A stretch of DNA of 64,000 bases from Octopus sinensis (Eukaryota): NCBI RefSeq assembly GCF_006345805.1, contig NW_021831849.1, forward strand, positions 1 to 64,000, given 5' to 3'. The translations under genes and the position numbers were made by a program. Shown piece after piece: positions 6,589-64,000 of this stretch (its first letter is position 1; every line of letters begins with the position of its first letter). Under the pieces are notes generated by a model. The model saw only the letters and a program-made list of their open reading frames with translations, ran no database searches and was not told the DNA's origin.

Positions 6589-7460
6589 CAGTGATTCTCA
6601 AGTGCGGCCCCTAGGATTTAATTGAGGGCCTTATGTTTCTATAAATATTTTATTTTTTGTCACGTTTTTTTATTTGTTGTTGTGATGTCGAATTCTAAAC
6701 GTTTTCGAAAAATTTCCAAGGAAAATAGGATTTTTAAACTCATATGGGAAGAAAAATATTTCATTATTGAGGTCAATGGAAAGCCTTTTTGCCTAATATG
6801 CAATTCTATTATTGTAACTTTAAAAACGTATACAATCGAACGGCATTACCGTTCCCACTCTATTCATTATGACAAATTCACTGGTGTTTCTCGGACGAAA
6901 AAACTAAAACAAATAAAAGAAGATTATTTAAAGCGATCATCCACTTTCAAAAGTGGGACATATTCGTCTAATATTAACCTGCCATCATACAAAATTAGTT
7001 ACCTATTGGCTAAAAATATGAAGCCTTATTCTGATGGCGAATTATATAAAACGGCAATAGAAATATTTGCATCGGAATGTTGTTCGCCCGCTGTTTTCGA
7101 TATTGCACACAAGTTACCTCTAAGTAACGATACTAAAATTAGGAAATAATACCGCAATGAACTAACGGATATCCATCTAGATCAGATGTTGCGGATTTCG
7201 ACATCTAATATCGTACCAGATTTTGAAAATATGACAAAGTAGTTTATAAATTCTTTCATTCATTGATATAACAAATGTGCGGCGATAGGACGCAACTCTA
7301 AATTGCATGTACACAGTAAAACAAAAATCATGTATTTTCTTCAGTTCAACCTGAAATAACAAATATCTTATCTTCATTAAGTTGACAAAAAAATGTACGG
7401 CCCCTATAAATAAAAAATTTGATTTTGCGGCCCCTGGCTCAAAATTCTTGAAAACCACTT
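6589..7460 (+). mobile_element. Internally deleted hAT (SPIN/GTF2IRD2-like)
   Basis: Imperfect TIRs CAGTGATTCTCAAG / AAGTGGTTTTCAAG; 8-bp TSD GGCTAGAT (6581-6588, 7461-7468). ORF 6622-7149 has WEEKYFIIEVNGKPFCLIC...IERHY (BED-like zinc finger). Confidence 0.9.
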
Positions 7461-7755: not shown

Positions 7756-9213
7756 CAGTGCCTGACAAAAAAAATTGGATTTGTAATAAATCGACTTTTT
7801 TTAAAAATAAATTATAATTTAATTTTCTTACATCATTCTTGGCAAAATTAGAATTATTTTTTTAATTTTTAAAATTATTTTTGGTTTTTAAAATTTAATT
7901 TTAAAGCAGAATTTAAAATTTGCCGGACAAAAAAAATTGGATTTGGACAAAAAAAATTGGATGTTCGTATAAATGAAGCGTAATTCAAAAATCCATTTAT
8001 CTGATTTTACAAAAGGAGTAATAATTGGATATTACTCTTCAGGAAAAACAATTGAAGAGATATCTAAAATACTGAAAATTCCCAGATCGACCGTGGGATT
8101 TGTGACAAGAAAATTTTCCAAAGAAGGCACTACTACGCGAAAAATTAAATCTAGACGTTTACCGAAACTCTTTTCAGATCAAAAAAACACAATACAATTA
8201 ATCTCGAGAGATGAACCCTCAATTTCTGCTGTGTCTCTTTCTGAGATAACAAAAACTCAATTTAATGTGGACGTATCTCCCAGAACAATTGGTCGTATAC
8301 TAAATTCATTTGGATTACATGCCCGAGTTGCAAAACACAAACCTCTTTTGATATCAAAAAACATCAAATCCAGATGGTTAATTGCGAAAAAGTTTTTAGC
8401 CATATCTGACGAAGAATGGAAGAAAGTCATCTTCTCCGATGAGTCATGTTTTGAGGTCTATATCAGCAAAATAAGGATCTATAACAGCAAAAAAAACGGT
8501 ACTGCATATGAAAAGTCCAATATCGTACCTACTGTTGAGTATGGTGGAGGAAAGTTAATGGTTTGGGGATGTTTCTCATATGAAGGCGTCGGTAATCTTG
8601 TTATTATAAATGGAAAAATGAACAGTGCTTATTATTTAAACATTTTGTCAAATAATCTGGAGCAATCAGCTCTAAAAATGGGGTTAAACTCATGTATTTT
8701 TCAACAAGATAATGCTTCATGCCACAGTTCTCGAGTAGTTAAAGAATTTATATGCGATAGAAAATACAAAATTCTTGATTGGCCGTCTCAATCACCTGAC
8801 CTTAATCTAATTGAGCATGTTTGGGCAATGATGAAGAGAAAATTATTGCAAAAACCGCCGAAAAACTTGAAGGATTTGGAGACAAAATTAGTTGTGATAT
8901 GGGAGTCAATACCGAAAAAATACCTAGAAAATTTAGTTATGTCAATGAAAAAAAGAAGTTTGGAAGTTTATGAAGCACGTGGAGGGATTTTAACTTATTA
9001 AATTTTAATTTGTTTCATTAAAATAAAAAATCCAATTTTTTTTGTCCGGCAAATTTTAAATTCTGCTTTAAAATTAAATTCTAAAAGCCAAAAATAATTT
9101 TAAAAATTAAAAAAATAATTCTAATTTTGCCAAGAATGATGTAAGAAAATTAAATTATAATTTATTTTAAAAAAATCGATTTATTACAAATCCAATTTTT
9201 TTGTCAGGCACTG
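7756..9213 (+). mobile_element. Full-length Tc1 element with ~200-bp IR-DR terminal inverted repeats
   Basis: TA|CAGTGCCTGACAAAAAAAATTGGATTTG ... CAAATCCAATTTTTTTGTCAGGCACTG|TA; near-perfect TIRs of ~200 bp, with inner direct repeats at ~7920 and ~9030-9054. Confidence 0.97.
7973..9001 (+). CDS. Tc1 transposase, DD34E, 342 aa, uninterrupted
   Basis: N-terminal HTH region; catalytic motifs VIFSDES, FQQDNASCH and SPDLNLIE, with 34 residues between the second D and the E. Confidence 0.95.
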   Translation: MKRNSKIHLSDFTKGVIIGYYSSGKTIEEISKILKIPRSTVGFVTRKFSKEGTTTRKIKSRRLPKLFSDQKNTIQLISRDEPSISAVSLSEITKTQFNVDVSPRTIGRILNSFGLHARVAKHKPLLISKNIKSRWLIAKKFLAISDEEWKKVIFSDESCFEVYISKIRIYNSKKNGTAYEKSNIVPTVEYGGGKLMVWGCFSYEGVGNLVIINGKMNSAYYLNILSNNLEQSALKMGLNSCIFQQDNASCHSSRVVKEFICDRKYKILDWPSQSPDLNLIEHVWAMMKRKLLQKPPKNLKDLETKLVVIWESIPKKYLENLVMSMKKRSLEVYEARGGILTY

Positions 9214-13060: not shown

Positions 13061-14299
13061 TAATTCTCCCGGTTGAGCTGCTAATGCGGCAAAATTGAAA
13101 AGAAGTTTCATTACTGTTTGAGAAGAGCGGGAATTCTGCGGGTCATGAAGTCCAAGAAAACACATATGACCACAATCGTAGAATTTATCACTCGAAAATA
13201 CAAAATTGGAGACCACGGAAGTCTCAATGTGAAGGCACTGCAAGGATTACAGAATGAATACCTAATTGCAGAAATCAGGAAAAAACCTCTGCATTCAATC
13301 CTCTTTAATTGTTTGGAGGATACTAATGTCGATGTTACGGAGTCCTCCGCGTGGTTAACATATGGAAACATCTCTCCGAGATCAGAAGCATCCTTCTGTT
13401 TACTACAAGACCGCAATTTCCTCTTTGGAGCAGGAGAAACGAATTGCAAACATTGCAACTCTGCGAAAAAAACTGTTGACCATCTAGCTACCAGGTGTGG
13501 GCGAATGCTAAACAGCGATTACTTACGACGGCATAATGAAGTAGTGAGATGTATTCACTTACATCTCTGCAGACAGTATGGAATAAAAAGGTCAAAAAGA
13601 TTGAAGACCCATTCAGTCCAGTCTATAGTTGCAAATGAAGCAGTTGAGATCAGAGTCGATAATACTATAAGTACTGACACACACGTTCATAACAACAAGC
13701 CCGACATTTTCGTGTGGGATAAAATTAAGAATACAATTACACTAATCGAAATTGGAATAACTTCGCAGCAAATTTTTAAAAAAGTCGAAGTCGAAAAATC
13801 CCACAAGTATGATCTCTTAGCAAGTGAATTGGCTTTAATCCACAAAGCAAAAGTGAATATAGTACCCATAGTATTAACGTGGGATGCCATTGTCAGTAAA
13901 TACTACAAACAATACCAGAATAGTCTGAAAATTGAGTACCCTGTAAGAGCATACATCCAAACTATTCTCATGAAGAAGACTCTTGAAAGTATGTGCATCG
14001 ATTATAAACATGGAATGATGTCCCAAGAGGACGACGGTTTTGAAGAAAATATAACTTTCCTTGATAACAACATAAATCAGAAACTCGACGAAACCGACTT
14101 AATGACGGGAGCATTTGAAAAAGAGTCCTACTCCTATAATAACATTAATCGAGAGGAAGAGCGATGGAACTATGAATTAGAACCTGATGAAAGTCGTCTC
14201 ATCCGAGAAAAGAAGAATGATCCTTTAGATTGCCTAAAAGAAGTTTGGAGACCGGTCAAGGTTGTCCGTGTTGGGGCAAAGAGGAGGATGGTCTATTGA
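13060..14299 (+). mobile_element. 5'-truncated R4/NeSL-like element (ORF 13118-14299: CCHC knuckle plus REL endonuclease)
   Basis: CKHCNSAKKTVDHLATRC, RHNEVV, KPDIFV and LIEIGI; collinear with the C-terminal third of 19951-23493. Confidence 0.9.
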
Positions 14300-19937: not shown

Positions 19938-22900
19938 TCATTAATTTTTTGTGGTGTTGTGCATGTCCGTTTTTATCAATAACAAGAAAACGAATCCCAT
20001 GGGCCTTTCTGCAGAATCAAATAATAAAAACAGTATAGTGGATGCAGGAGTGTTGTCTCTGGGGCTGGATAACGGCACAAGAACTAATATTAACAATAAT
20101 CCTACAGTTGGAAGTCGTGCTGCACCAACTAACTTTCATTCCATGTCCGCCATTATTAAGGATGTCAAGTGTGTCTCTGAGACTGAATGGGTGTCTCAGG
20201 TGTTCTATGCTATCAAAGAAAGATTTGGAAGGATGCCTAGAGGTGGCTGGGATCTCATTCTGAAAAAGTTCAATGAAAAATACTTAAAGTGCTCAAGTCT
20301 ATATCAACTAAAAAAAATGGTCAAACCACTAAATGGGAATCAAAATGTAGGGAAAAGAGGCGATTGTAGTGAAGGAAAATCTAACATGAATATTGAAATT
20401 TCTAACTTCAAGAATTGTCTAGAAGAACTCAAAGTCCAACTCGAAAGAATCAAATCTATTCCTAGAGAGTCTCGAAAACCTACCCCAAAAATCCAAAAAA
20501 ATAGAGTGAAAACTAATATTCTGTCTGGATTGAATTCTGCAATTTATCGTATTACAGAAGATAATCCTCCACAAAATATGGATCAGATTACAGACATATT
20601 ATATGCTGCACAGTGTGCTTATTTGGCCTTAACTATAAGACCAAAAACAAAAAGCACATGGTTGGAAAACACAGAAAACAAAATTTCGAAATTAGCAGCT
20701 GAAATTAAATTAGTGAATTCCTTTTCGAGACAAGCATTACCTCAATCTGAAAAGAAAAATGTAATGGATATTCTTTGCCGCTACGGGTATAAAAAATCTA
20801 AAAAGGGAGAGCTAATGAGAATTGAGGCCTTAATGAATGACCTAATCAGAATTAAAGAGAAACAAATATCCATTTATAACTCGAGGAAAGAGTTCCGAAA
20901 AGACAATGCGTGCTTCGAATTAAACCGTAGAAGGTTTTACCGAAACTTATCGTCGAATAATGAGGTAACCTTATATGGCTTTGATGATGATGACTGCTTG
21001 TTATTCTGGGAGAACGTCTGGAGAAAGAAAAATATGGATCACGTTTCGTATAATTGTGTGGATGTGAGGTCTACCGGTGGTGAAGCTATGGAACCTCAAT
21101 TCACAAATGAGTTGGTTAAAGATATGCTCAAATATGCGCCTGATTGGAAGGCGTGCGGATGCGATGGAACATATAACTTTTTCATCAAGAAAATGAAATC
21201 ATTACATGAATTCTTGTGTAATGAAGTAATCCGGATAATCAAGGGTGAGTACATGCCCGAGAGTTGGTTTTACACAGGATTAACTTACTTGATTCCAAAA
21301 AAGGATGATTGTGAGAATCCAAAGGATTTACGCCCTATAACGTGTATGCCAACTTTGTACAAGCTTGTAACGAAGTGTGTGAATGTTAAACTCTCTGATT
21401 TTGTGGATGGACTTGGGCTGATTTCAGACAATCAACTTGGAACCAGAAAGCAATGTCAGGGTGCGAAAGAGCAGGCACTTATTAATCAATGCTTGAACAA
21501 GGAATATGGAAACAGTCTGTACTCTGCTTGGGTGGATGTAAAGAAAGCCTTTGACTCGGTTGATCACCAATTTTTATTCCACATATTGGACAGCTCTGGA
21601 ATTCCACTCTGGATTATTAACTTTGTGAAAAGTATAGTCAAGAAGTGGAAAGTAAATCTACATCTTGATGGAAGGAAAATTGGTTCAGTAAAGCTAACCC
21701 GAGGAATTTTACAAGGAGATTCATTATCCCCATTGCTATTTGTTATGGTAATGGATCCCCTAAGCAGGATCCTGAACTCTAAATTCCCCAAATTGCAAAT
21801 TAATCAGGAGGATCTAAATATGTTGACATATTCTACCAATCACCTATTTTTTATTGACGATCTAAAGATATTTGCTCTTAAAGAGGACAGTGTTATTAAA
21901 ATGATGGAAGCTGTTAAAGAATTTTTTGACATCGTTGGCCTGGAGATGAACTCTGAAAAATCGGCCTCTAATGTCAAATCTTTATCATGCTGTGAGACTT
22001 TGGAAGGAATCAATGGATATCGCTATTTGGGCGTATTTGAAGATGGAGGAAGTAATGTCCTCAAGAATAAAGTTATGAATTCAATAATGGAGAATGTAAA
22101 AAAAAGAATAACTATGTTGTCAAAAACAAAATTGAATTCGGTGAACTTATTCTATGCCATAAATGAATATGCATTGTCCCTATATAATTATTATATTGGG
22201 CTAATTAATATTGAGCCATATGAATTTGATGACATTGATAAACAAATACGTCGACTGCTCATGACACTCAAGTTACATCTCCAGCCTGCAAATAAAGAAA
22301 GGCTGTATTTAGACCGCAAAACTTTTGGAAGAGGACTTGCCTCCATCTCGTTCAAGAGCGAATTAATACTCATGCAATTCCTTAAAAGCTTGGAAAAACA
22401 GTCGGCTGTGTGTTTGCGAAGGTCGGGGATTCTGCGAGTTATTAAAACAAAGAAATGGCATTTGGCTACAATCGCAGGATTTCTTACCTCTAAATACGCT
22501 ATTGCTGACACAGAAAGCATAGATATTAATTCTCTCAAAGACATTCAGAAAAAATATTTGCTAAACAAAATAAAGTCCAAGTCACTACACTCTGTTATGT
22601 TCAAATGCCTGGATGAATCAAATGTCGATCTTTCTACTTCCTCAGAATGGTTAGCCAAAGGAAATAATGGCTCCCGAAGTGAAGCATTATACTGCCTTCT
22701 GCAAGATAGAAATTTGTTTTTTGCAAACACGAGGCCGTTATGCAATCATTGTAAAAAAAGTAAACAAACTGTTGATCATCTGGCCACTCAGTGTGGTAAA
22801 ATGCTCAATAGCGATTATCTCCGAAGACATGACGAGGTGGTTAAATGTGTCCATCTTCATATTTGTCGAATGTATGGAATCAAAAAGAACAGGAAATTAA

Positions 22901-23549
22901 AGACTCATTCAGTTCAGTCGATATTGTCAACTCAAAATGTAGAAATTAGAGTTGACACGTCAATTATAACAGAAAATAAAGTCAACTTCAATAAACCGGA
23001 TATCTTTGTTTATGACAAGATTAAAAAGGAAATAACCTTAATCGAGGTGGGCATAACATCTCAGGACCGCTTAAAACAAGTGGAAGTTGAGAAACTTCAC
23101 AAATATGATTTCCTTGCAAATGAACTATCACTACTCTACGAATGCCAAGTTAAAATTATTCCCGTGGTTCTGACCTGGGATGGTGTTGTCACAAGATGCT
23201 TCAAAAATTATATGGATAAACTATATATTGAAAAATCTACAATGACATACATCCAATCGGTTGTGCTCAAAAGGACGCTAGAGAGCATGATAATTGAACA
23301 CAAGCATGGAATGAAAATAACTGGCGAGGAATATGCCTCTGCGACCGATCAACTAGTAGAAATGGCATGCCGCCAGGACACTCCATTCAAAGATAAAAGA
23401 CGCACAACAACTGACGCAGAGATAGAGAATGAAGAGGAACAAGCAGCAGACTCTTCTCCTAAAAGGAGAAGAGAGACTACCAATCAGGATTGAAAATCCT
23501 AATTAAATATCTTAACCTTAATTAAATTTTGGTTTAATAAATTATTAAT
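19938..23549 (+). mobile_element. R4/NeSL-like REL non-LTR retrotransposon, apparently intact
   Basis: Single long ORF; candidate 13-bp TSD TTAAGATTTAATA at 19925-19937 and 23550-23562 (AT-rich, so moderately supported). Confidence 0.85.
19951..23493 (+). CDS. Reverse transcriptase / CCHC / restriction-like endonuclease polyprotein, 1180 aa
   Basis: RPITCMPTLYK, WVDVKKAFDSV, GILQGDSLSPLLF, LFFIDDLK, CNHC...HLATQC, KPDI...LIEVGI; no stops. First ATG is at 19963. Confidence 0.95.
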   Translation: MVLCMSVFINNKKTNPMGLSAESNNKNSIVDAGVLSLGLDNGTRTNINNNPTVGSRAAPTNFHSMSAIIKDVKCVSETEWVSQVFYAIKERFGRMPRGGWDLILKKFNEKYLKCSSLYQLKKMVKPLNGNQNVGKRGDCSEGKSNMNIEISNFKNCLEELKVQLERIKSIPRESRKPTPKIQKNRVKTNILSGLNSAIYRITEDNPPQNMDQITDILYAAQCAYLALTIRPKTKSTWLENTENKISKLAAEIKLVNSFSRQALPQSEKKNVMDILCRYGYKKSKKGELMRIEALMNDLIRIKEKQISIYNSRKEFRKDNACFELNRRRFYRNLSSNNEVTLYGFDDDDCLLFWENVWRKKNMDHVSYNCVDVRSTGGEAMEPQFTNELVKDMLKYAPDWKACGCDGTYNFFIKKMKSLHEFLCNEVIRIIKGEYMPESWFYTGLTYLIPKKDDCENPKDLRPITCMPTLYKLVTKCVNVKLSDFVDGLGLISDNQLGTRKQCQGAKEQALINQCLNKEYGNSLYSAWVDVKKAFDSVDHQFLFHILDSSGIPLWIINFVKSIVKKWKVNLHLDGRKIGSVKLTRGILQGDSLSPLLFVMVMDPLSRILNSKFPKLQINQEDLNMLTYSTNHLFFIDDLKIFALKEDSVIKMMEAVKEFFDIVGLEMNSEKSASNVKSLSCCETLEGINGYRYLGVFEDGGSNVLKNKVMNSIMENVKKRITMLSKTKLNSVNLFYAINEYALSLYNYYIGLINIEPYEFDDIDKQIRRLLMTLKLHLQPANKERLYLDRKTFGRGLASISFKSELILMQFLKSLEKQSAVCLRRSGILRVIKTKKWHLATIAGFLTSKYAIADTESIDINSLKDIQKKYLLNKIKSKSLHSVMFKCLDESNVDLSTSSEWLAKGNNGSRSEALYCLLQDRNLFFANTRPLCNHCKKSKQTVDHLATQCGKMLNSDYLRRHDEVVKCVHLHICRMYGIKKNRKLKTHSVQSILSTQNVEIRVDTSIITENKVNFNKPDIFVYDKIKKEITLIEVGITSQDRLKQVEVEKLHKYDFLANELSLLYECQVKIIPVVLTWDGVVTRCFKNYMDKLYIEKSTMTYIQSVVLKRTLESMIIEHKHGMKITGEEYASATDQLVEMACRQDTPFKDKRRTTTDAEIENEEEQAADSSPKRRRETTNQD

Positions 23550-34109: not shown

Positions 34110-35316
34110 TAGGGCAACCGGAAAGTTGCTCTTAAAAATGTAAAAAATTGACCTTAAAAGTCAACTAAATTGCTTCAAAAAATAAAAAAAGTTGACATAA
34201 TATGCATAAAAAGTTGCCCCAAGAAACAGAAATTTATTTATTAAAGCACAACATTAAATAATATTTAACATTTTCAGGTAAGAAATTTCTATCTTTGGTT
34301 AAAATTTTGTGAAGAATAGAAAATGATCTTTCTACTTCACCCGATGTTGCCGGGCAATCCAATAATAATGCGTGGTGAAATGAAGTAATTGGTAGCTTAG
34401 ATAACTCCATTATTTTGAAAATGTCTTTTCTTGAAATTCGTAAGCTTATGTAGTCTCGAATTTTGCATTGGGAGCTGTATTGATTGCAATACAATCAATT
34501 AAAAAATATTCTTGTGGATTTTTTAACGTTCCAACAAGACAATTAATATACTTCTCTTTTCCAAAATCACTTTCGTCAATCATTAAAACAATTTGTTCAC
34601 TTGAAACTGTGTTAATAATTTGTGAAACCATCCTTTCACCTAGAAATGTAACAATGTCTCTGCATTTGGTTTCCGAAGGAACAGAATGTCCATATTTATT
34701 TAAAAAACCAATAATTGATGTATTTCGTAACTTATGAAGTGGAATATTTGCTGATAAAAATGCATTTGCAAGATCCACGGCAAAACAATCAGCAGTAACC
34801 TCATTTTTACTATGAGTATCCAAAGTATTATTAGTATCTGGGATTCTCAGGATATGCTTTTTAGAATGTCTGTGCTTATCAATAAACCATTGCTTATTAG
34901 CAGTTACGTAAGAATTACATAATTTGCAGAATAATTTTCCATCCAGTGAAGATGAAAACTCCTTAGGATATTTTTTAACAATAGAAGAAATTCGCTTAGT
35001 GTTGGAACTCCTGTTTTTAAGCATTGTAAAAAAGCAGTCAACAAAAACCGAAGAAACGTGCACTATGAAATTATATTAATATTAAAAAAAAATGTTATTA
35101 TAAATTTTTATTACTCAATAAAATAAAAGTTGACAATAAGAGTAAAAAAGTTGCTCAATAAAATAAAAGTTGACGGTAAGAGTAGAAAATTGATTTTGTT
35201 GCTTTTATAACTTTTTATATATACATTTTTTTATCGAAATAATTTGACTAATATCATTTTAACACTATAATTAAACCAAAAACTCAAGTTGACTTTGTTG
35301 ACTTTCGGTTGCCCTA
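34110..35316 (-). mobile_element. Internally deleted hAT of the CGGBP1-related type
   Basis: TIR TAGGGCAACCG; 8-bp TSD ATAATAAT (34102-34109, 35317-35324); ORFs with LFCKLC...KHRHSKKH, AFLSANIPLHKL and CPATSGEVERSFS; subterminal AAAAGTTG repeats. Confidence 0.9.
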
Positions 35317-37069: not shown

Positions 37070-37369
37070 TCACTGTAATCTGTAAGAGAAATTTCATCAA
37101 ATTATTATAATTTAGTTCTTCAATGATTGAGAAATTATCAAGTTTTTATTGGGCAACTGAAAATGTTTTTCTATGAGAGATTTATTCTATAAACAGTTAT
37201 AATAAATCATTTTTGTCTAACGATTTAGGGATGGTTGGTTTTGCTCTCTCTGGACAAATTATTCTCATCGAGTTTCTTCTGTTTTTTAATTTGATTTTGA
37301 TTAAAATAAATTATAATTTTTTAAATATTTTTTTTAAATAATCAATCAATTTCAAATTTTTCTTATTTC

Positions 37370-37720
37370 TTAAATCTTTTCAAGTTGAAATCTGAACTCA
37401 TAATATTTTTGGAGTGTCTCGAAAGATGTATTTTGCGCTACATTTTCCAACTTATCCATCATTTCATACGTTTCTAATATCGTTGTTTTGTCCTTTGTCC
37501 CAATTCCATTATAAAATTCGCGACTTTTGACTAGATCTTCGTTTTCTTCAGATATTACTTCAGTTATTATTTCTTTCAGGACTTCTTCCCCGCAATTTTT
37601 ATCTTCAACTAATTCTTCTCTATTTTCCTCAATTTTCTTCCAACAATTAATTATTGTTGTTTCTTTAACTTTCATCCACGCTTTTCTAACAAGTACCATA
37701 ATCTGTCGCATATCTACATG
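37370..37720 (-). mobile_element. pogo/Tigger transposase C-terminal fragment
   Basis: VRKAWMKVKETTIINCWKKI motif. Confidence 0.65.
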
Positions 37721-38090
37721 AAAATGATTTAAAAGAATTGATAAAATATTCTGAAGAAAATCCAACAAAAACATCGAAAGAGATCTCAAATGAAATCGGA
37801 AAACTAACAAATAAAAAAATTTCATCAAGAACAATTATAAGAAATCTAAACGAAAATGGTATATTTGGGCGTGTCGCTAAAAATAAACCATTTTTGAACA
37901 AAAAAACACTGAAAAAAGATTGAAAATAACGAAAAAATTTTTAACCATATCTGATGACGAATGGAAAAGTACAATTTTTTCGGATGAATGCGTTTTTCAC
38001 GTGATTCCAAACAAAACAAGAAAAATAGTTTATAGGAAAAGCGGTGAACAATTTAAGTCTAAAAATATTTCAACAACTGTGAAATTTTTT
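37720..38090 (+). mobile_element. Tc1 transposase internal fragment (second family)
   Basis: SSRTIIRNLNENGIFGRVAKNKPFL; LTISDDEWKSTIFSDEC; collinear with 7973-9001 but divergent. Confidence 0.8.
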
Positions 38091-38133
38091 TTTTAATTAT
38101 AACAATTTATTTCAGAAACGAGTTAATTATAAG

Positions 38134-38960
38134 TAGGGTAACCGCAAATATGACCTAAAAAATTTCAAATATGACCGATAAAATATGACTTATATGACCT
38201 TAAACGAAAAAATATATGCCCTTAATATGACCTAATAAATTTTTATTTTTATGTATTAATAAAGTTTTAATAAGGCTTATATTTAGAACTAATCACTCAA
38301 ATTTATTGTAATATAACGAAAAGTAATATTTAATGTTATCATTTTTAAAGTTTCTTTGAAGCATAGAAAAACTTCTTTCAATAGAAATAGTTGTTGCTGG
38401 ACATTTCCATAATATCGAACAAATTTCTGGTGAACAATTATCAATCTTAGCAGTATAAATTTCTTTTAATCGATTTTTATCTATTCTTTTACGGAAATAT
38501 TTAGATATTCCACATGGATCATCCCCAAAATTTATCACATTAATAAATTTAACGGCATCCTCAATGGTAAAAAAAGTTTCTTGGCATTGATGTAATCCAT
38601 CTAATATGTCACTATAACATGATTTTATCAATGCAAGGTTTCTTTCCAAATTAATTGAATCTAAAGCAGTTTTTACTTTATCTAAGATTTTCCCTTTTTT
38701 GTTAAATTCAGGACCAGAAACTATAGTGCGAACTGTATGCATGTTTTTCGAGTAGTAAAGGTTGCACTAAGCCAGGTTCCCCATCTTGTAATTATTACTT
38801 CAGGTGGCAATCGACGAAAAGCATTAAAAGTTAATTCGTCAAGTTTTTCAGGGTTTTTGTTGGGGCGGGGTTCAACTGTACTATCATTTCTAAACTCAAA
38901 AAACAATAAATTAATTCAAACAAGTTTTGACGTGGTGCTTTCCCTTAGAATGCCTGCAGT
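38134..38960 (-). mobile_element. CGGBP1-related hAT 3' remnant; only one terminus present
   Basis: Terminus TAGGGTAACCG with AAATATGACC subterminal repeats; ITRWGTWL and CPATTISIERSFS. Confidence 0.75.
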
Positions 38961-39007
38961 TATATATAATTATAAACGAAAGAATAAAGTAGCCCAAAAC
39001 AACTCAG

Positions 39008-40167
39008 TTAAATGTAACTATTCTTCATTCCGCGAGTACGAATGATGGTCTCAGTGCCTCTGACCATGTCGGGGACATTAGGATCATCAGAGAAGAGGAG
39101 TCCAGCAATGTCAGTCATGGATGCCTTATCCAACAATCGATTGCCCCTGAGATCCCTCTTGATGACAGCAAAGGGGACATCCACATTAAAGTGATGAAGC
39201 AATGCCTGCAATTGTACAGTCCTGGCACAGTCGGGGACATGTTCTCCATAGATGACCTTAACAAACCCCATCATGGTGTCCGGCGTGCAGTCCAATTCCA
39301 ACACCTCCACATTGTGCTTTCTAAACAGCACTCGGAGACAGTCAGAGCGGACAGCCAACACAAATTTGTGTACCCGGACTGACTGGGAGTCCCCACACCT
39401 CAGTTCGATGTCACACAGTCTCCCCTCATTCCTCAACTCACTCAACTTGTCCCCAAAATTGAACACTCTCTCCCGATACAACGGCCCATATAACGAAACT
39501 GGCGGGAAATATTAAACCATACCTTTTTCCCGCCTTTCGGGCTCAGATTGGATAGGCCGGACAGCCAGTTGGTCCTCAAACAGACTAATCTGCACATTGA
39601 GGGGGAAGGCGTGGTTGTGAGCCTCCACCATCGACTTAACCACCAGAAACTGATGACATCTCGTCAGTCCCACATCAATTCGGAAAGGACACGTGATTCG
39701 GTCATACAGTCTGAACTGCATGTCCGCCCCGCAGTGAGTCGAGCATCCGTAGGTCAGGTTGTAGAACAGCAGAGAAGGGTTTGTCCTCTTGCCTGTCCTT
39801 CTTGTTTGCAGTCGACGGATTTTCTTGGCCACGACCGGCAGGAGGCGGATTCGACGCACGTTTTGCAGGTTGATTAGTTTGTGGGCCAGTTCGTCGAATG
39901 ACACAAATTCGTCCCCTTCAGAGATTATTCGATCTCCCTCGTACGAAGGGATCACTGCGTTTGGACATTCGTTTAGAGAGGGTGGGAAATTATGTAGTTG
40001 TTCTGTCTGGTGGGACAACAGTCCTTCATCACTTTGGGCACCCAGTTCGCTGTCTTCTGACACTACCACGTCCATGTTTGGGTATTCTTCCTTCAGGCAC
40101 ATCACATTGTTCTTTAATTGGTCGTATGATGTGAATAGTGACTAAATTATACTCACCACACTACCAT
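39008..40167 (-). CDS. FAR1/ZSWIM3-N-like DNA-binding domain fused to a BTB(-partial BACK) domain, 3 exons, ~370 aa
   Basis: ATG-only exon 40165-40167; introns 40142-40164 (23 nt) and 39499-39522 (24 nt) keep frame. Motifs FVSFDEL...LTYGC...CPFRIDV...HQFLVV...HNH, then LRNEGRLCDIELRCG...VHKFVLAVRS and LLFSDDPNVP. Confidence 0.75.
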
Positions 40168-40259
40168 TCCACTACAAACTATATCTATATCTATTTCTTA
40201 TTTTATTACTAATCAAATTAACTATTAATTAATTATTTTTATCAATTAGTTTGACAACT

Positions 40260-40980
40260 CTGCCAAAGGCAATAGTCCTCATCCCTTAAAATAAAATGGG
40301 CAGGTCGGCATCATTTTCTTCAAAAGTTTGGGGATTAGTTGATTTGTTTTTATACTTCTCAGATACGTATCACGGCATTTTCTGTAATTATTTCCCGTTT
40401 GTTTTAATGACAGTGCATTTAAGTTGAGTTTCCTCCTCCTGTGAATAGCATGTGTTCCTTTGATATTAATTTTGTTCCTTATTAGATGCTTATTCAATGA
40501 AATTTTGGCAATGATTATTTTGTAGTCACTGTGGATAATTGACCCCCCATATGATCTTGCGTCAATGAAAAGTGCTTTGTCTTTAGCTCGACAGATTATG
40601 TAATCAATCTGGTTGTAAATGTTTATAACTTTGCCACAAAAATTTTTCGACACCCTGTCCATGTAGTTTTATGTCTTGCAGGGTGCATAAATGCAGTGTT
40701 GCACGTTTGCCTGACAAAAATTGACAAGCAATGTACTTGCAACGTTCCGTATTCCTCTTCCGTGTTTTCCCATGAAGGTTTTATTTGGGCTTCTTTTAAT
40801 TCCCACTTTAGCGTTGAGGTCGCCAGCGACGAGTGTACAAGTTCAGAATAAACTTCAAAGAGACAGGAGTATAACAGATCTATCTCAATACGGTCTTTTT
40901 CAATCCATCCGCTATGTGATGTGTATATGTTTATAATGGATAGCAAGCTTTTAGATTGGCAAAGCTTGTTCATGCTAATC
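40260..40980 (-). mobile_element. RTE-like apurinic endonuclease fragment
   Basis: CNTAFMHPARHKTTW; YNQIDYIICR...DARSYGG...HSDYK. Confidence 0.75.
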
Positions 40981-41069
40981 TGAAGTACGCAAATCCGATC
41001 ATTTATGCTCTAGGACGGTGAATCATTGGTCTCACTTTATCACAAATCCTTACCCAAAATGTCTGCATT

Positions 41070-41900
41070 CTCTCTGGAATGAGATGAAATGATAGCCAGT
41101 TTCTCAATTCCATGCCAAGCAGCCTGCCGTTTTTCTGGGAAAGTCATAAGGTCGGAATGTGGAATCCAACTGGGTGATTCTCTCGGACGTCTTTTTTTGC
41201 TGTCTGTGTTGATCATGTGGTACGCATCTCGCTTCCTTGGAGAGTCTTCGCACGCAAGCCGATCAGATGCAACTAACTTCCTTTAACTGTCATGCCAGCC
41301 TTACTCGGGGGATTGGCTAAATGCTCTCTACTTTTGGAGGACGAGGCTGTTTGTATCGGAGTGTGTATTCGATCTGGACTTGATATATGCCAACTGTACC
41401 GTTGCCGATATGATTTCATGATCCTTTCAAACAGATTACATGCCTTGTTCTGTGAGAAGAGTGCTGGCCGATTTCCGCGTGAAGTGATTAAGAGAGCATT
41501 TGATTCCGCAGGATTCCCGTCTATCTTGGAACCCGTTGGTCTCTTTCGGGGTGATGGAAAACGTCCCAACGGGATGACTAAATTCCCATTCAGAGGAGGT
41601 AGGTCACTCGTTTGGGACATGACCTGTTTGGATTTCCTGTCAAAGAGGTTGTTGTCCAGGACATGTTTTCCAAGATATGCTTGCGGGCTTGCAAGGAAAA
41701 AGAAAATATTGAAATACACTTAGCTTTCGGAGGTCTATGAGTTTGTGCCCCTCACCTTCGATGGAAAACAGACTGAGAAGTTGTTACGGCTGGTAAGCAA
41801 AAAAATCGCATTGAAAACTAATGACCGAAGGGGGACGAACTGGCTCTTCCAGTGCGTCTTGGTCTCAATTTTTCGCTGGTACTGCCTCTCGATTCACAGC
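41070..41900 (+). mobile_element. CRE-like element with large internal deletion
   Basis: ECGIQLGDSLG; GVCIRSG...CRYD...LHALFCEKSAG; GDGKRPNG...LVWDMTC. Confidence 0.8.
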
Positions 41901-42244
41901 GAGTCGCGGTCGGACTGACCATCAAGTCTGCGACATAGATATTATGTCACATGCCTCAGCGATTACTATGCCCCACTCGTTACCTCTGAGAAATATGATT
42001 TTTAATTTTTAAGAAAAATTAAAAAATCAATCATAATGCAATAAAATTTGAATTGTGTGAAAAGCTTAAAGCAACATAATTTGATAGTTTATAAAATTTA
42101 AAATTAATTATTTTGTCCTTTATTTGATTCTTTTCATGTAAACTATCTTTGTATCTCCATTCGAAAATTCTACATTAACGCGGTTATAAGAAAGATTGAT
42201 TTGATCGTGACAGTATCACAACAAGCACTTTCAAATTTTTTCAA

Positions 42245-42381
42245 ACCCTAACCCCAACCTTTGCCCTAACCTTTACCCTAACCCTAACCCCAACCTTTAC
42301 CCTAACCTTTACCCTAACCCTAACCCCAACCTTTACCCTAACCTTTACCCTAACCCTAATCTTTACCTTAGCCCTAACCCC
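42245..42381. repeat. Telomere-like (CCCTAA/TTAGGG-variant) array with a 36-bp higher-order unit
   Basis: Unit ACCCTAACCCTAACCCCAACCTTTACCCTAACCTTT repeated ~3.5 times. Confidence 0.85.
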
Positions 42382-42535: not shown

Positions 42536-42572
42536 ATGGTAACGCGTGGGGCATGGTAACGCGTGGGGCATG
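42536..42572. repeat. 17-bp perfect tandem duplication
   Basis: ATGGTAACGCGTGGGGC x2 plus ATG. Confidence 0.9.
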
Positions 42573-42594
42573 TGACATATTAGTTACTAGCTCA

Positions 42595-47475: not shown

Positions 47476-48097
47476 TGTTCCCTCTGGTCTTCGGGCTCCT
47501 GGTCCCGTCTAACAGCAGTCCTGACCTTGTCCAGCTTTGTCTAAGTTCCCTCTGGTCTTCAGGCTCCTGGTCCCGTCTAACAGCAGTCCTGACCCTATCC
47601 AGCTGTTGTCTAAGTTCCCTCTGGTCTTCGGGCTCCTGTTCCCGTCTAACAGCAGTCCTGACCTTGTCCAGCTGTTGTCTAAGTTCCCTCTGGTCTTCAG
47701 GCTCCTGGTCCAGTCTAACAGCAGTCCTGACCCTATCCAGCTGTTGTCTAAGTTCCCTCTGGTCTCCGGGCTCCTGTTCCCGTCTAACAGCAGTCCTGAC
47801 CCTATTCAGCTGTTGTCTAAGTTCCCTCTGGTTTTCGGGCTCCTGCTCCCTTCTAATCCCAGTCCTGACCTTGTCCCGCTGTTGTCTAAGTTCCCTCTGG
47901 TCTTGGGGCTCCTGGTCCCGTCTAGCAGCAGTCCTGACCTTGTCCAGCTGTTGTCTAAGTTCCCTCTGGTCTTCGGGCTGCTGGTCCCGTCTAGCAGCAG
48001 TCCTGACCTTGTCCAGCTGTTGTCTAAGTTCCCTCTGGTCTTCGGGCTCCTGGTCCCGTCTAACAGCAGTCCTGACCCTGTCCAGCTGTTGTCGAAC
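47476..48097 (-). repeat. 69-bp coding tandem repeat x9 (23-aa unit RQQLDRVRTAVRRDQEPEDQREL) in the Helitron N-terminus
   Basis: Read directly from ORF 47468-48271; the ninth unit has a 1-nt deletion. Confidence 0.92.
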
Positions 48098-49130
48098 TTC
48101 CTTTTGATTCTGTGTCTCTTCAGACCTTTTCCTAGCCATTCTCAACCTATTTTTTTCTCGTCTAAATTTTGCCATTTCAGAACTCTCATTTGACCTCTTA
48201 ACTGGCATTCTAATTCGCTTACTTAAACTAACGCATATATCATCGTGACTATAGTGTCTTGAATTAGCCAAATCTACATTTATTAATTTACGTTTTGCGC
48301 TATATAGATCATCTAAAACCTGTGTATTTCCAGAATATTCTATGTTCGTTAATCTGGAATCTGTTTCGACGTACTATAAAATAATTTACAGTTCATGTAT
48401 TAATACCTTTCTAACATTCGGGTTTTCATTTAGACGATTTGGAAGATTAACTTCTGTAATGCTTGATACACTGGCATTACCTCCACCTAGACCTACCTTA
48501 CCTACACTGCCTACGCCTATATTAACTACACCTACATCATCTACACCTACACAAACTACATTTACCGCCTCACCATTTAAGCACATTTCATCTTTATTAC
48601 TCCCCCCAATCTCCCCTCGTTTCTCTTTTTTTGTTATATGGTCCATTTTCTCTTGTTGTTAACATTCTCAGATCTCTCTTGATAGGACATTCTTATGATT
48701 TTGTAAACGCGAATCAGTAATTTATATTAAATTTCTACGTAAATTTATTTAGTGAAATTTATGTAAAGTGTATTATCCAATCAAAGCCATTATACTTAAT
48801 TGCCTCTATGTTTAAAGGAATTGAAACTTTAGCATAATCGAACTTGTCTGTTTCGGTGAAGAAAATGATAATCAGCCTCATCTTTGGGTATTATACAGAA
48901 AAAAATTAAAGCCTGTTAAATCAAGGAGATTTAAATATAGGCAAATTGAAATTTACATGGCTAATTTGAATTTTATTTGCCTCTATCTTTTAAGGAATCT
49001 AAACAGTAGCATAATCGAATTTGTCAGTTTCGGCAGTTAAAAAGATAATGAGCCTCATCTTTGTGGAAAAACATCTAAGCCCGTCAAAGTAATCTGAATA
49101 AAGGCAAATGTAATTTAGATGACTAATTTA

Positions 49131-51528
49131 TTGAATAAAGGTAAATGTAATTTAGATGACTAATTTGAATTTTAATTGGCTCTATCTTTTAAGGCATTTA
49201 AACATTAGCATTATCGACTTTGTTAAATTGCATAAATTCATTTTAAATTTCTAAATTATTTGACTGGAAGGGATTATATATTTAATGGTATGCAATTCTA
49301 TTCAGATTGCCTCTTTTGGCTGGAAGGGATTATATATTAATTTGCTATGCAATTCTATTCAAATTGCCTCTAACATAAACAGGCCTTAAAGCTTTTTTTA
49401 AATTGAACATGTAAATTTTGGCGATCGAAAACAGTAATTAGCTTCATCTTTTGTGTATTATAAGGAAGAAGAGTACAGATAGTCAATTCAAGGTAATTTA
49501 TAAATGGCAATTTGTAATTTAGATGTCTAATATGAACGAATATCATTAAAAAAATATTTTAGAAAAAATACGTTATTAAATTTTTAAAGTACAAAATTGG
49601 TTTTCTTTATTGTTGTTCATTTTTTTATCTGTTTGCATTGTTTTCATTTGATTTTAAGTTTTGCATTTTTTAATGTTTTTTGGTATATATAATTTTTTGT
49701 GCATTTTTTAATTCTTTTTCCTTTTTAGTTTCATTGCAATATATTTTGGATTAATTTTCGTTTGTTTGCATTATCTGTATTTTTCTGTAATTATTGTTTC
49801 TGAGACTTTAGGAAACACACACACGCACAAACACACACTCACAAAAACACACTCACAAACACACACTCACAGACTCAGAAACACACACACAGAAACACAC
49901 AGGCGTATAGACTTTGTTTTTTGTTTTCATATTTGTTTTATAAATTTGTTTTTTTATTGTGATTTTTTATTTTGTATTTCTATTGTGTTTTTTTCTTTTT
50001 ATAGTGTTTTATTTTTCTCTTTGGATTTTTCGATTTTATATCATTTTTTAATTTTTTTAATTTTTCTTTAATTTTTTTATTTTTCTTTATTATTTTTTAT
50101 TTTTGTTTAATTTTTTTAATTTTTCTTTAATTTTGTTTATTTTCTTTATTATTTTTTATTTTTGTTTAATTTTGTTTAATTTTTCTTTAATTTGTATTTT
50201 TTTAAATTTTTTAATTTTTCTTATATTTTTTTATTATTCTTTATTTTTCTTTAAATTTTCTTTAATTTTTTTTGTATTTCTTTAATTTTTTTCTTTATTT
50301 TTTTATTTTTTTCTTTATTTTTTTATTTTTTTAATTTTCATCATTTTTTTGATTTGTATTTCTTTATTTTTCTTTAAATTTTCTTTAATTTTTTTTGTAT
50401 TCTTTTTTAATTTTTTTCTTTATTTTTTTTTTTTTTTTTTCTTTATTTTTTTATTTTTTTAATTTTCATCATTTTTTTGATTTGTATTTCTTTATTTTTC
50501 TTTAAATTTTCTTTAATTTTTTTTGTATTTCTTTAATGTTTTTTATTTTTTTTTAATTTTCATCATTTTTTTGATTTGTATTTTCTTCTATTTTTGTAGG
50601 GGGGATGGGGGGAGTATTTTTGATTTTTGAGCTTAAAAAACAAATTAAATTAGAATCAACAGTCACATAACACACCGAGTAGTTATTTAACAGATTTAAG
50701 AACGATAAGATAGATAATTAAAACAGGCATACCCAAATAAATTTAAAGTTAACGCAAAAACAGAAATAAATAGTTAATATTTCTACGCGTTTTCGCATAA
50801 ATGTCTTGTCAATAGATAATCAATTATGTAAATCTTTATTAAAATTTGCTTTTTACTTTTTAATTTAAAGATTAGCATACTTGAGGTTGTCAGTTTCGGC
50901 GATTAAAAAGATAATAAGCCACTTTTTTGAGATATTATAAGGAAAGATTTGAATAAAGGTAAATGTAATTTAGATGACTAATTTGAATTTTAATTGGCTC
51001 TATCTTTTAAGGCATTTAAACATTAGCATTATAGACCTTGTTAAATTGCATAAATTCATTATTAAATTTCTAAATTATTTGACTGGAAGGGATTATATAT
51101 TTAATTGGTATGCAATTCTATTCAGATTGCCTCTTTTGGCTGGAAGGGATTATATATTAAATTTGCTATGCAATTCTATTCAAATTGCCTCTAACATAAA
51201 CAGGCCTTAAAGCTTTTTTTAAATTGAACATGTAAATTTTGGCGATCGAAAACAGTAATTAGCTTCATCTTTTGTGTATTATAAGGAAGAAGAGTACAGA
51301 TAGTCAATTCAAGGTAATTATAAATGGCAATTTGTAATTTAGATGTCTAATATGAACGAATATCATTAAAAAAATTTTTTAGAAAAAATACGTTATTAAA
51401 TTTTTAAAGTACAAAATTGGTTTTCTTTATTGTTGTTCATTTTTATCTGTTTGCATTGTTTTCATTTGATTTTAAGTTTTGCATTTTTTAATGTATTTTG
51501 GTATATATAATTTTTTGTGCATTTTTAA
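49131..51528. repeat. ~580-bp direct repeat pair (49131-49710, 50949-51528) flanking a CA microsatellite and T-rich low-complexity DNA
   Basis: Near-identical blocks starting TTGAATAAAGGTAAATGTAATTTAGATGAC; CA-rich run 49806-49900; T-rich repeats 49910-50600. Confidence 0.85.
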
Positions 51529-51592: not shown

Positions 51593-52250
51593 GCTCGAAG
51601 GGTTTGGGGGACCACACCATGTGAGTCGAGGACTTTCTTATTGTTCATTTTAACAAAAACGCAGAAAATAATTTGTTTTAATTTTTTGACTTGAAGGTTT
51701 TGGGGGACCTCATCATCGAGGATATTCTTTCTTATTAAAATTTTTTGACAGGACGGTTCTTAGAGGATATCAACCTTTTATTGTGCCTCATTATCGAATA
51801 ACTACAAAAGGGAAGGTTTTGACAATTTGATCTGGTTTGTAACAATTTGAATGTGGGTGTGCACAGACAGACAGACACACAGACAGACACACACCATACC
51901 ATTTTATTATTAAGAGCTCGAAGTTTTGGGGGACCACACCATGTGAGTCGAGGACTTTCTTATTGTTCATTTTAACAAAAACGCAGAAAATAATTTGTTT
52001 TTAATTTTTTGACTTGAAGGTTTTGGGGGACCTCATCGTCGAGGATATTCTTCTTATTAAAATTTTTTGACAGGAAGGTTCTTAGAGGATATCAACCTTT
52101 TATTGTGCCTCATTATCGAATAACTACAAAAGGGAAGGTTTTGACAATTTGATCTGGTTTGTAACAATTTGAATGTGGGTGGTGCACAGACAGACAGACA
52201 GACACACAGACAGACAGACAGACACACACCATACCATTTTATTATTAAGA
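51593..52250. repeat. Tandem duplication of the Helitron 5'-terminal ~325 bp
   Basis: Both units end in CAGAC...ACACACCATACCATTTTATTATTAAGA (at 51915 and 52250). Confidence 0.85.
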
Positions 52251-53160
52251 TTTTCTTCAATTTCCAGAAGCCGCCAACTTGTCAGAGAGGTTCTACTCCC
52301 CTTCAACGAACTCTCTCTGGAGTTGCCGACTGCTGACTTCCTGGAATTCTGGATCAATTCCAACCTTCAGATCCCTTCTGAGATGTCCAGACAGAGGGAT
52401 TGGGACGAGATCTGGCCAGCACACTCGTTCTCCACGCTTCAACCGGCCTTGTACCAACACCGCCAAGCCTGCCTGCTTTCTACAGCACACGAGCATAGTG
52501 GTTCTTGGCTCGACGCTTACCCAACGTCATCGACGGGTTCCCTATTAGACAACGAAACACTGCGTATCGGGGTCGCTCTTCGGCTGGGGCTCGATGTCTG
52601 CGCCCCTCATCCCTGTCGATGCGGTGGTACGGTGGACGTGAAAGGCCTCCACCCCCTCTCCTGCCGCCGGAGCGCAGGCCGCTCGCCTCGCCATGGAGCA
52701 ATCAACGACGTAATTTCAAGAGCTCTCAACGCTGCTGGCTTCCCCAACGTGCTTGAACCAGCCGGATTGGACAGAGGGGACGGCAAACGCCCGGACGGGA
52801 TGACCACTTTCTAATTCCGGAATGGCAATTGCCTGATCTGAGACGCCACGTGCGCAGACACGTGGTCCCCATCCGCTCTACTGTCATCTGCTCCTTCTTC
52901 CGGCTCGGCCGCGGCCCTGGAGGAAGCCCGCAAAGTAGAAAAGTACAAGAATCTTGCCACTCGGCATTCCATCGTGCCTGTGGCTTTTGAGACATCAGGC
53001 GCTTCCGGTCCGCTGACCTCATGCTTCTTAAAAGACCTCGGAATCCTCATTGCTCGGAAGAAGATGGATGCTCGCGAGTCCTCTTGGTTGAGGCAGAGGA
53101 TCTCGCTTGCAATCGTGCGCGGAAACGCGCAAGCAATCCGTTCGGCTGGGCTATAACCCC
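52251..53160 (+). mobile_element. CRE-like 3' portion (CCHC plus REL), least degenerate copy
   Basis: SGSWLDAYP...LRIGVALRLG...CRCGGTVDVKGLHPLSCRRSAG...GDGKRPDG; VPVAFETSG; QRISLAIVRGNAQ. Confidence 0.9.
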
Positions 53161-62663: not shown

Positions 62664-64000
62664 TTACTGAAGAACGATAGCGACCTAATATAGCAAATCA
62701 TCGGCATCACACCTGTTCGGGGGGAATAGGAGAAGTTCGCCAATTGAACAAATAATAGTACAAATTTCCATCTCCCTTCCCAAACTTATGCTGATCAAAG
62801 AATCCATTATTATCCATTATGTTTAGGGCATTAAAAACATCTATCCCGACCTAGGATAATCTAGCAACAGTTACACTTCATTCGCATACAAAAGGAGGCC
62901 ACTGACCATTTCATGCAAGGGATTACTAGAACAAGCATAATAGAACAAATATGCGGAATTTAAAACGGAATGGCGGGGATTATTCAGTATTGATGTCTGC
63001 AGAATATACGCGGAAATAAAATCGACAACGTTTCCGTTATCATCCTGCAAAAATTCAACAAAACAAAAACTTCCACAACAAAAGACCAAACAACGTTTTC
63101 TCTCGGCAAAAACCAATGACAGAACTCGTCAAGCCCAAATTCAGCATGCATACTGTATTTACTTAGAAACTGCCAAAACAAAAAGAAAGACGACTTCATT
63201 AAGAAGAGCATGTGCCGTCAGACAGTGACGCTCAAGCATAGGCTGAAATCCTTTTGGTTTATTAAGCCTCTCCAATGAGCATAACTTACAATATTGTTTT
63301 AGAGAGATATTAGAGGGAGCTCTTGCAAACTGACATTCCACAAGTTTTTTGACGTTGATGAGTCGATGATAATAGCAGACAGAAGCTGAGGGTTTGGATA
63401 TGATCTTCCCTCCAGTATATATAGCTTGGAAAATTCCCTGGAGATTTACTAGTCTTCTTATTTCCCGAATGAGAACAGTAGCCATACGATTTCCACGTAA
63501 TTTTTTGTTTACACATAAAAAATTTACATCGACAGAGTCAAATTTTCTTATAAATATTTGAAATATTAGAAAAAACTTGTCCTCAATGTGGACGACATAT
63601 GGAACAGCGGATATGAAACCACACAATTTTCGGTTTTTAGTAACTCTAATTCCCAAATGCCATTCGGCACGCCATCCTGGGGGCTTAAGTGCCCTAACAA
63701 GTGACCAAAACGAATTTTTTATACCATCTGAGAAAATCCTTGGAATAATTAAATCTAAATAAATTATCACTGTCTTCAACATAATGGTCCCTCAAAAGTT
63801 GATATACCTCATCCAACTACAAAAATAAAAATCATTATAATAATTGAATGTTGTAATGACGACTAAGATACTACCATTTTATGATCGTTGATATCTAAAG
63901 TATTGTCCCATTGAAATCCTTCTGGTAGTCCGTATGGTGTTTGTCTTACTTGATCAGCTGTTGTAGCACACTCATACTGTTCGTTTCCCTCAACATGTTC
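62664..64000 (-). CDS. NMT1: Glycylpeptide N-myristoyltransferase, multi-exon; 5' end beyond the window
   Basis: [64 protein letters not shown]...[16 protein letters not shown] and VAIVLQ-stop; introns ~25-28 nt (e.g. 62685-62712). Confidence 0.93.

Follow-up and report, generated by a model that had tools for sequence, protein, structure and literature searches.

A candidate two-exon gene placing a WRKY-GCM1-type zinc finger ahead of a BTB domain in contig NW_021831849.1

The minus strand of positions 1 to 64,000 of contig NW_021831849.1, filed under the Octopus sinensis assembly GCF_006345805.1 (this whole 64,000-nt stretch is called the window below), carries two listed open reading frames (ORFs) that may be the halves of one gene. 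ORF A (39512..40105, 197 aa) encodes a zinc-finger domain of the ZSWIM3_N/FAR1-like kind, and ORF B (39008..39481, 157 aa) encodes a BTB domain. The two lie in one shared frame, 30 nt apart, and are interrupted by a single TAA at 39512-39514, which falls within a candidate 24-nt intron. We give slightly better than an even chance to the account in which the locus is a single lineage-specific gene, whose two exons are joined by spliceosomal removal of this intron and which encodes a DNA-binding, dimerising BTB protein of about 356 aa (Table 1).

Table 1. Features of the candidate gene and its 5′ flank (positions are those of the window)
Feature	Position	Strand	Description
Exon 1 (preferred model)	39523..40102	-	ATG at 40100-40102; 193 codons plus 1 base; acidic disordered N-tail, zinc-finger domain and first half of the linker
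Candidate phase-1 GT-AG intron, 24 nt, GTATGGTTTAATATTTCCCGCCAG	39499..39522	-	Holds the sole in-frame stop; lies within the disordered interdomain linker
Exon 2	39008..39498	-	Remaining linker, BTB, 54-aa low-confidence C-tail; stop TAA at 39008-39010
ZSWIM3_N/FAR1-like WRKY-GCM1 zinc-finger domain, aa 62-164	39611..39919	-	Pfam PF21599, structure, zinc ligands
BTB/POZ domain, aa 212-300 (Pfam match)	39179..39445	-	Pfam PF00651, structure
Optional alternative start: ATG 40165-40167 plus 23-nt GT..AG 40142-40164	40142..40167	-	Speculative; would prepend 13 residues, SLFTSYDQLKNNV, to the M at 40102
Very AT-rich 5′ flank	40170..40262	-	13% GC at 40200-40259; directly upstream of the coding sequence; possibly a promoter or 5′ untranslated region

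The first line of evidence is the reading frame itself. The longest run with one stop at the locus comprises 376 codons, compared with a maximum of 240 among 500 shuffles. The coding sequence (CDS) has 50% GC versus 36.1% in the whole window, and its GC contents at the three codon positions (GC1/GC2/GC3 =.557/.359/.585) keep their periodicity in all 5 segments of the gene, i.e., the N-tail, zinc finger, linker, BTB and C-tail. The one-stop run, the five-segment periodicity and two independent Pfam matches, one in each ORF, show that this pattern exceeds chance. The edges of the GC-rich stretch coincide with the start and the end of the CDS, and the idea that this GC-rich island is an inserted element was rejected on that ground.

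The original prediction described two ORFs that can be joined in frame through a 24-nt GT..AG segment, giving 371 codons of coding-like DNA richer in GC than its surroundings. Translation of the minus strand confirms the join; the composition (about 50% GC vs 36%, with codon periodicity) agrees with the description; and the arithmetic is right for the model then proposed, which amounts to 1113 nt, or 371 codons including the stop. That model began with an exon made of a bare ATG. The ATG and the 23-nt GT..AG segment behind it do exist and do join in frame, but this exon is unnecessary because exon 1 has an ordinary in-frame ATG of its own. Shuffling the 5′ flank produces the bare-ATG pattern, which was defined after the data had been seen, in 1.1% of cases.

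Downstream of the TAA, the first in-frame ATG of ORF B occurs only in the middle of the BTB domain (...DTMMGF...), so an intact BTB could not be translated from this ORF alone. This bears on the proposal that the locus comprises two independent genes, one for a stand-alone zinc-finger protein and one for a stand-alone BTB protein, each transcribed or translated on its own. A stop codon does separate the ORFs, and stand-alone WRKY-GCM1 proteins do exist in animals (PMC1702500); with a common frame and an interval too short to accommodate a promoter, however, we find this proposal scarcely credible.

The second line of evidence comes from the N-terminal half, for which sequence and structural modelling support a ZSWIM3_N/FAR1-like zinc finger of the WRKY-GCM1 fold with an intact C-C-H-H site. 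ORF A matches Pfam ZSWIM3_N (PF21599) at E 5.3e-7 and 30.6 bits (cutoff 27.8) over positions 3-102 of the 102 in the model, and the spliced protein scores 29.1 bits. Residues C120, C138, H162, N163 and H164 are invariant when the domain is aligned with its two best ZSWIM3-like matches; the predicted zinc ligands are C120 (39743-39745), C138 (39689-39691), H162 (39617-39619) and H164 (39611-39613). When modelled alone with AlphaFold2 (AF2), the domain reaches a pLDDT of 71 and a pTM of 0.65, and strands at aa 87-94, 113-120, 141-146 and 153-159 form the four-stranded antiparallel sheet of WRKY, GCM and Aft2 proteins. The six best Foldseek matches in the PDB are the Aft2-DNA complex 4lmg (probability 0.99-1.0), AtWRKY1 and AtWRKY18. 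Analogously, a sequence profile of the domain compared with PDB sequences places Aft2, WRKY33 and WRKY1 in the top three positions. A profile search with the domain retrieved 11 proteins, 10 of which bear PF21599 alone, and the named ones are crustacean. The domain has a basic stretch and is flanked by segments that are disordered in the AF2 model: the N-tail (aa 1-55, pLDDT <50), which is acidic, with 11 D/E versus 1 K/R, and the linker at aa 167-202.

The third line of evidence is the BTB domain of the C-terminal half, which Pfam identifies in ORF B at E 8.6e-14. The AF2 model has a pLDDT >90, and its fold, including helix α1 at aa 200-217, extends over approximately aa 200-311. Foldseek returns 216 PDB matches at E ≤0.001, the best of which (PLZF, KEAP1, myoneurin and Kaiso) have E ~2e-6 and TM(target) of 0.72-0.76. 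By sequence, the nearest solved BTB chains are mostly of the transcription-factor type, namely ZBTB17/NAC1, PLZF, PATZ1, CP190 and ZBTB18. The FxLRWN motif of TTK-type BTBs is absent from the protein. Only 54 residues follow the BTB, and they are disordered (pLDDT <50); even at E ≤1, no Pfam model for BACK, FLYWCH, FAR1, MULE or SWIM matches the ORFs or the spliced protein. Structure prediction for both halves was a check set beforehand, and it leads to Aft2/WRKY structures for one half and to BTB structures for the other. The two domain identities originally predicted thus stand: FAR1/ZSWIM-like with the WRKY-GCM1 fold for the N-terminal half, where the Pfam match, the four zinc ligands and the Foldseek and profile matches to Aft2 and WRKY concur, and BTB for the C-terminal half, where Pfam, structure and sequence matches agree.

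The same prediction had allowed for a BACK domain behind the BTB and for a role as a Cullin-3 (Cul3) adaptor. In that case the gene would be real, with its BTB serving to bind Cul3 and its zinc finger to recruit substrates, either DNA-bound or protein. The 3-box/BACK region sets apart the Cul3-binding KLHL-type BTBs (PMC11426971), and Pfam finds neither BACK nor 3-box here; the disordered C-tail is all that follows, with no downstream domain. Moreover, the A2-B3 loop, site of the hydrophobic-x-E motif that contacts Cul3, is short, as it is in PLZF; in our reading of an alignment whose register is uncertain, it reads K-H-N-V-E, without a clear hydrophobic-x-E. What speaks for an adaptor is that BTB structures of KEAP1, KLHL proteins and SPOP are among the best Foldseek matches, and that P0001, the best BTB match in the representative library, resembles tandem-BTB proteins of the MATH-BTB/SPOP kind in our own reading of its sequence. 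With BACK and 3-box missing, we regard the adaptor role as highly unlikely.

The candidate intron, GTATGGTTTAATATTTCCCGCCAG, reads GTA...CAG, has a length that is a multiple of three, and includes the TAA. Its excision would link ...EPERREK to VSLYGPLYRERVF..., with the junction at aa 193/194. All other in-frame GT..AG pairs that span the TAA exceed 31 nt, measuring 48-120 nt. Its size is normal for this genome, as judged by a partial N-myristoyltransferase (NMT) gene that occupies 62685-64000 on the minus strand and runs past the window edge. The NMT gene has 7 GT-AG introns of 58, 31, 30, 25, 26, 26 and 28 nt. Its spliced product of 370 aa matches Pfam without gaps (NMT, positions 5-158 of 160, E 1e-64; NMT_C, positions 1-185 of 198, E 6e-58) and has a best database identity of 49%, to assorted metazoans, with no self-match. 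Six of these 7 introns are 25-31 nt long, and the candidate is about that size; the 24-nt length proposed originally thus fits the genome, NMT introns in the same window being 25-58 nt.

Among animals, introns of <30 bp are on record only in myxobolid myxozoans and in Dicyema japonicum, with a 5′ signal reduced to 'GTa' (PMC13644364). The NMT introns thus place this genome with the very few animal genomes of that kind, and its host is probably either a dicyemid or a myxobolid myxozoan. The window consists mostly of transposable element (TE) fragments, and its 36.1% GC and heavy repeat load fit D. japonicum, the genome of which has 36.7% GC, 49% repeats and many long interspersed nuclear elements (LINEs) (PMC6736024).

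The flanks of the gene were scanned with Pfam in three frames of the gene strand over 37300-39010 and 40100-41300, i.e., 1.7 kb downstream and 1.2 kb upstream, and nothing was found at E ≤0.1; thus, these flanks contain no BACK exon, DDE core or SWIM finger. Pfam scans of the neighbouring ORFs for BACK, MULE, SWIM and hAT also found none, and no convincing inverted repeats flank the gene. The earlier statement that terminal inverted repeats (TIRs) and a DDE core are missing nearby is upheld by these scans and by the inverted-repeat check, and it can be extended to the SWIM finger. The search for further 3′ exons, another check set beforehand, ended with no domain in the 1.7 kb downstream on the gene strand. 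Rfam and tRNA scans of the window returned nothing.

A hAT-like terminus, TAGGGTAACCGCAAATATGACC (TAGGGTAACCGC...), followed by three subterminal AATATGACC repeats, lies downstream of the gene at 38134-38242; no partner for TAGGGTAACCGC was found within the window. ORFs beside this terminus (38293-38906, minus strand) resemble the C-terminal region of hAT transposases by eye and have no Pfam match. For the hAT element originally placed at 38134-38960, the terminal sequence is indeed hAT-like, but no Pfam match backs the label.

These surroundings raise the question of whether the locus belongs to a mobile element, either as cargo or as coding sequence; it might be a derivative of a Mutator-like element (MULE) in which a BTB replaced the DDE core, or a gene fragment carried by another transposon. 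It would then be multicopy and not a host gene. Its DNA-binding domain is of the Mutator-transposase type (PMC1702500), its GC3 is close to the values of certain GC-rich TE ORFs of the window (0.59 in 52173-52814) and unlike that of NMT, and the island is sharply bounded by a LINE-like fragment and the hAT-like end. Yet the locus occurs once in the 64-kb window, it lacks convincing flanking TIRs, and the hAT-like terminus at 38134 is unpartnered there. No MULE, SWIM or other transposase domain lies within 1.2-1.7 kb on the gene strand, and the GC-rich stretch stops at the ends of the CDS, as a coding effect predicts. In our opinion, a mobile-element origin of this kind for the locus as a whole is distinctly unlikely.

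Database searches returned single domains at most. The spliced protein had no match among 5.8 billion proteins in a word-indexed search; full HMMER against 1.84 billion representatives gave 8 weak matches, each to a single domain and none covering both halves; and a scan of JGI metagenomes gave no match. It should be noted that the protein collections searched do not include the proteome of the source genome and that both domains are divergent, which limits these negatives. Exact-protein look-ups of a Tc1 ORF and of two versions of ORF A found no record. In the literature, we found no description pairing WRKY-GCM1, ZSWIM3 or FAR1 with BTB. In the original prediction the architecture was not known to have been described, and it is likewise absent from the literature found and from the 1.84 billion representatives.

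A number of observations weigh against a single functional gene and must be set beside the evidence above. A random TAA in the codon-shuffled CDS can be removed by an in-frame GT..AG of 20-31 nt in 32% of trials, a rate that falls to 11% if the segment must start with GTA. At 580 and 491 nt, both exons exceed the genome mean of ~198 bp in D. japonicum by a wide margin (PMC6736024). The GC3 of the gene is 0.59 versus 0.34 in NMT, the one clear host gene of the window, and the gene is located among TE fragments; both features would suit a sequence that is recent, TE-related or decaying. As for the domains, the ZSWIM3_N score of ORF A is just ~3 bits over the Pfam cutoff, the Foldseek matches of the N-domain have modest values (E 0.02-0.26, TM 0.43-0.47), and the BTB structures of KEAP1 and KLHL proteins score equal to those of ZBTB proteins, which does not separate a ZBTB-like from a KLHL-like subtype. 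Similarity over both halves is absent from every search made, with no orthologue or paralogue among the results.

With random in-frame TAA codons excisable this often (32%, or 11% with GTA), the sequence alone stops short of proving the intron. Starting from an even prior, null rates of 0.11-0.32 would make a real intron highly probable. We temper this to a comfortable likelihood because the gene has no other introns, where the D. japonicum mean is ~6 per gene (PMC6736024), and because its GC3 departs from that of NMT. Splicing of 39499-39522 is thus likely.

If splicing does not occur, the locus could be a relic, i.e., a recently dead gene in which the TAA is a true nonsense mutation and the GT..AG is coincidental. 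At most, a zinc-finger protein of 196-197 aa would then be made and the BTB would go untranslated. Against this, the reading frame shows one stop in 376 codons and zero frameshifts, and key residues are retained in both domains, both of which fold confidently in AF2. Moreover, the stop falls exactly in the interdomain linker, within a GTA-starting segment of typical intron size. The removable-stop null rate of 0.32, the TE fragments on both sides, codon usage unlike that of the host NMT gene, the lack of a homologue in the databases searched, and the lack of further introns against the genome average of ~6 per gene (PMC6736024) all remain on the side of the relic, which we nevertheless consider rather unlikely.

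Under the single-gene account, the predicted protein consists, in order, of an acidic disordered N-tail, the zinc finger, a disordered linker of ~40 aa, a long-form BTB with α1, and a short unstructured tail. By analogy with Aft2 and WRKY proteins, the basic, zinc-stabilised four-stranded sheet would read DNA. The flexible linker would join this reader to the BTB, which, being of the long form with helix α1 present, would pair two chains. The paired protein would bind paired sites and could recruit partners, and the acidic N-tail could serve as an effector region. If expressed in this form, the protein would presumably function as a BTB transcription or chromatin factor that carries its DNA reader ahead of the BTB rather than behind it, and the gene would have originated through capture of the DNA-binding domain of a MULE.

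We also put forward, with somewhat less than an even chance of being right, a broader scenario in which a transposase domain was domesticated independently, in an animal lineage that ranks among the poorest in genes. In this scenario, a Mutator WRKY-GCM1 domain was exon-shuffled across a 24-nt phase-1 intron onto the front of a BTB, giving rise to a lineage-restricted transcription or chromatin factor. Its domain order would be the inverse of that in all described BTB transcription factors, and its origin would lie in a parasite from which most conventional transcription-factor families have disappeared.

The theme of a BTB combined with a transposon-derived DNA-binding domain is known already, for example from mod(mdg4) with FLYWCH and pipsqueak with PSQ-HTH (PMC1702500, PMC11426971). 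The present case differs in the family to which its finger belongs (ZSWIM3_N/FAR1-like rather than FLYWCH), in the finger's position before the BTB, in having no further DNA-binding domain, and in its host lineage. Mod(mdg4) and the other insect BTB-FLYWCH proteins are alike in coupling a BTB/POZ oligomeriser to a WRKY-GCM1 finger of transposon ancestry, which yields an oligomer targeted to DNA or chromatin (PMC1702500, PMC11426971). In Mod(mdg4), however, the BTB is N-terminal and of the TTK type (FxLRWN, hexameric), and it is combined with alternative C-terminal FLYWCH exons. The gene described here instead has the finger first, of the ZSWIM3_N/FAR1-like family, with no FLYWCH Pfam match, no FxLRWN, and a locus of a single isoform. 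The reversal of domain order relative to Mod(mdg4), which had been pointed out originally, is thus borne out, as the zinc finger precedes the BTB.

With respect to the finger, the closest parallels are ZSWIM1 and ZSWIM3, plant FHY3/FAR1, and the stand-alone animal proteins P0003, P0005 and P0009, which share an N-terminal domain of the PF21599 family with conserved C, C and HxH. These ZSWIM- and FAR1-like proteins either retain both the MULE core and the SWIM finger or consist of the stand-alone domain, whereas in the present protein a BTB takes the place of the core and the SWIM finger is missing; identity is 26-31%. Yeast Aft1/Aft2 (Rcs1) offer another parallel. Aft2 (4lmg) is the top structural match and belongs, alongside FAR1, to the insert-containing, MULE-derived branch of WRKY-GCM1 domains, which came to serve in transcription factors after recruitment from MULE transposases (PMC1702500). 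Aft1 and Aft2 differ in being fungal iron-responsive factors without a BTB, and the shared sequence is confined to the CPFRIR...HxHE core.

With respect to the BTB, the ZBTB factors (PLZF, ZBTB17/Miz-1, NAC1 and Kaiso) possess the same long-form dimerising BTB and are the closest solved sequences. They read DNA through C-terminal C2H2 arrays, whereas here the sole reader would be the N-terminal WRKY-GCM1 finger, with nothing after the BTB. ZBTB11 comes nearer in layout, with a TE-derived, integrase-derived (zinc-binding) domain N-terminal to the BTB (PMC12062965). Fusions between host genes and transposases are well documented generally; KRABINER and other KRAB-transposase fusions likewise put a transposase DNA-binding domain, by exon shuffling, beside a host effector or interaction domain, which yields a novel regulator with sequence specificity (bioRxiv 10.1101/2020.05.07.082677). 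Those fusions are vertebrate and mostly combine KRAB with Tc1/mariner, hAT or P-element sequences, and BTB and Mutator are not mentioned there (bioRxiv 10.1101/2020.05.07.082677).

If the gene proves to be expressed and conserved, it would provide a clean non-vertebrate, non-insect case of transposase-domain capture yielding a regulator, and it would indicate that the pairing of a BTB with a transposon-derived reader arose repeatedly and in either order. It would also enlarge, by one lineage-specific factor, the extremely reduced transcription-factor repertoire of its animal group, and offer a compact case for how 24-nt introns delimit shuffled domains. If it is not expressed, the locus is another decaying fragment of a repeat-rich region.

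Other elements of the window were recorded in passing. An uninterrupted 342-aa ORF at 7973-9001 (+) appears by eye to be a complete Tc1/mariner transposase and possibly derives from a recently active element; a Tc1/mariner-like fragment at 37738-37923 (+) matches Pfam HTH_Tnp_Tc3_2 at E 3e-12. An intact reverse-transcriptase ORF of 1180 aa occupies 19951-23493 (+), and its C-terminal region (CNHCKKSKQTVDHLATQCG...) recurs in a 393-aa ORF at 13118-14299 (+). The two are copies of one retroelement family, at least one of them with a full-length ORF. GC-rich ORFs at 41292-41723 (+) and 52173-52814 (+) share ...AGFP(S/N)(I/V)LEP(V/A)GL.RGDGKRP(N/D)GMT... and look like pieces of a single unclassified repeat family; a Pfam scan of the 41292-41723 ORF gave no identification. 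The 52173 ORF is immediately preceded by 1.9 copies of a 322-nt unit, which match at 96% (51593-52216).

Tandem arrays are also present. At 47477-48101, a 69-nt unit is repeated in 9.1 copies (91% match, ~48% GC) and contains long ORFs on both strands; that of the minus strand is 267 aa long and is built of 23-aa QEPEDQRELRQQLDKVRTA-like repeats. An extremely AT-rich array of T-tracts extends over 50033-50572 (16% GC over 50001-51000; periods 7, 20, 59 and 128). An interstitial telomere-like array at 42244-42359 comprises 3.2 copies of the 36-nt unit AACCCTAACCCCAACCTTTACCCTAACCTTTACCCT at 98% match, with CCCTAA and CCTTTA variants. It lies inside 45-nt inverted repeats (41940-41984 and 42538-42582) that are 82% complementary and 553 nt apart, an arrangement that may represent a foldback or miniature inverted-repeat transposable element (MITE)-like element bearing telomeric repeats. 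Finally, ORFs at 6622-7149 (+) and 34446-35063 (-) have similar N-terminal zinc-finger regions, the former matching Pfam zf-C2H2_12 ('Spin-doc zinc-finger') at E 3.5e-6, just under the cutoff, and both may be the N-termini of hAT/GTF2IRD2-like transposases.

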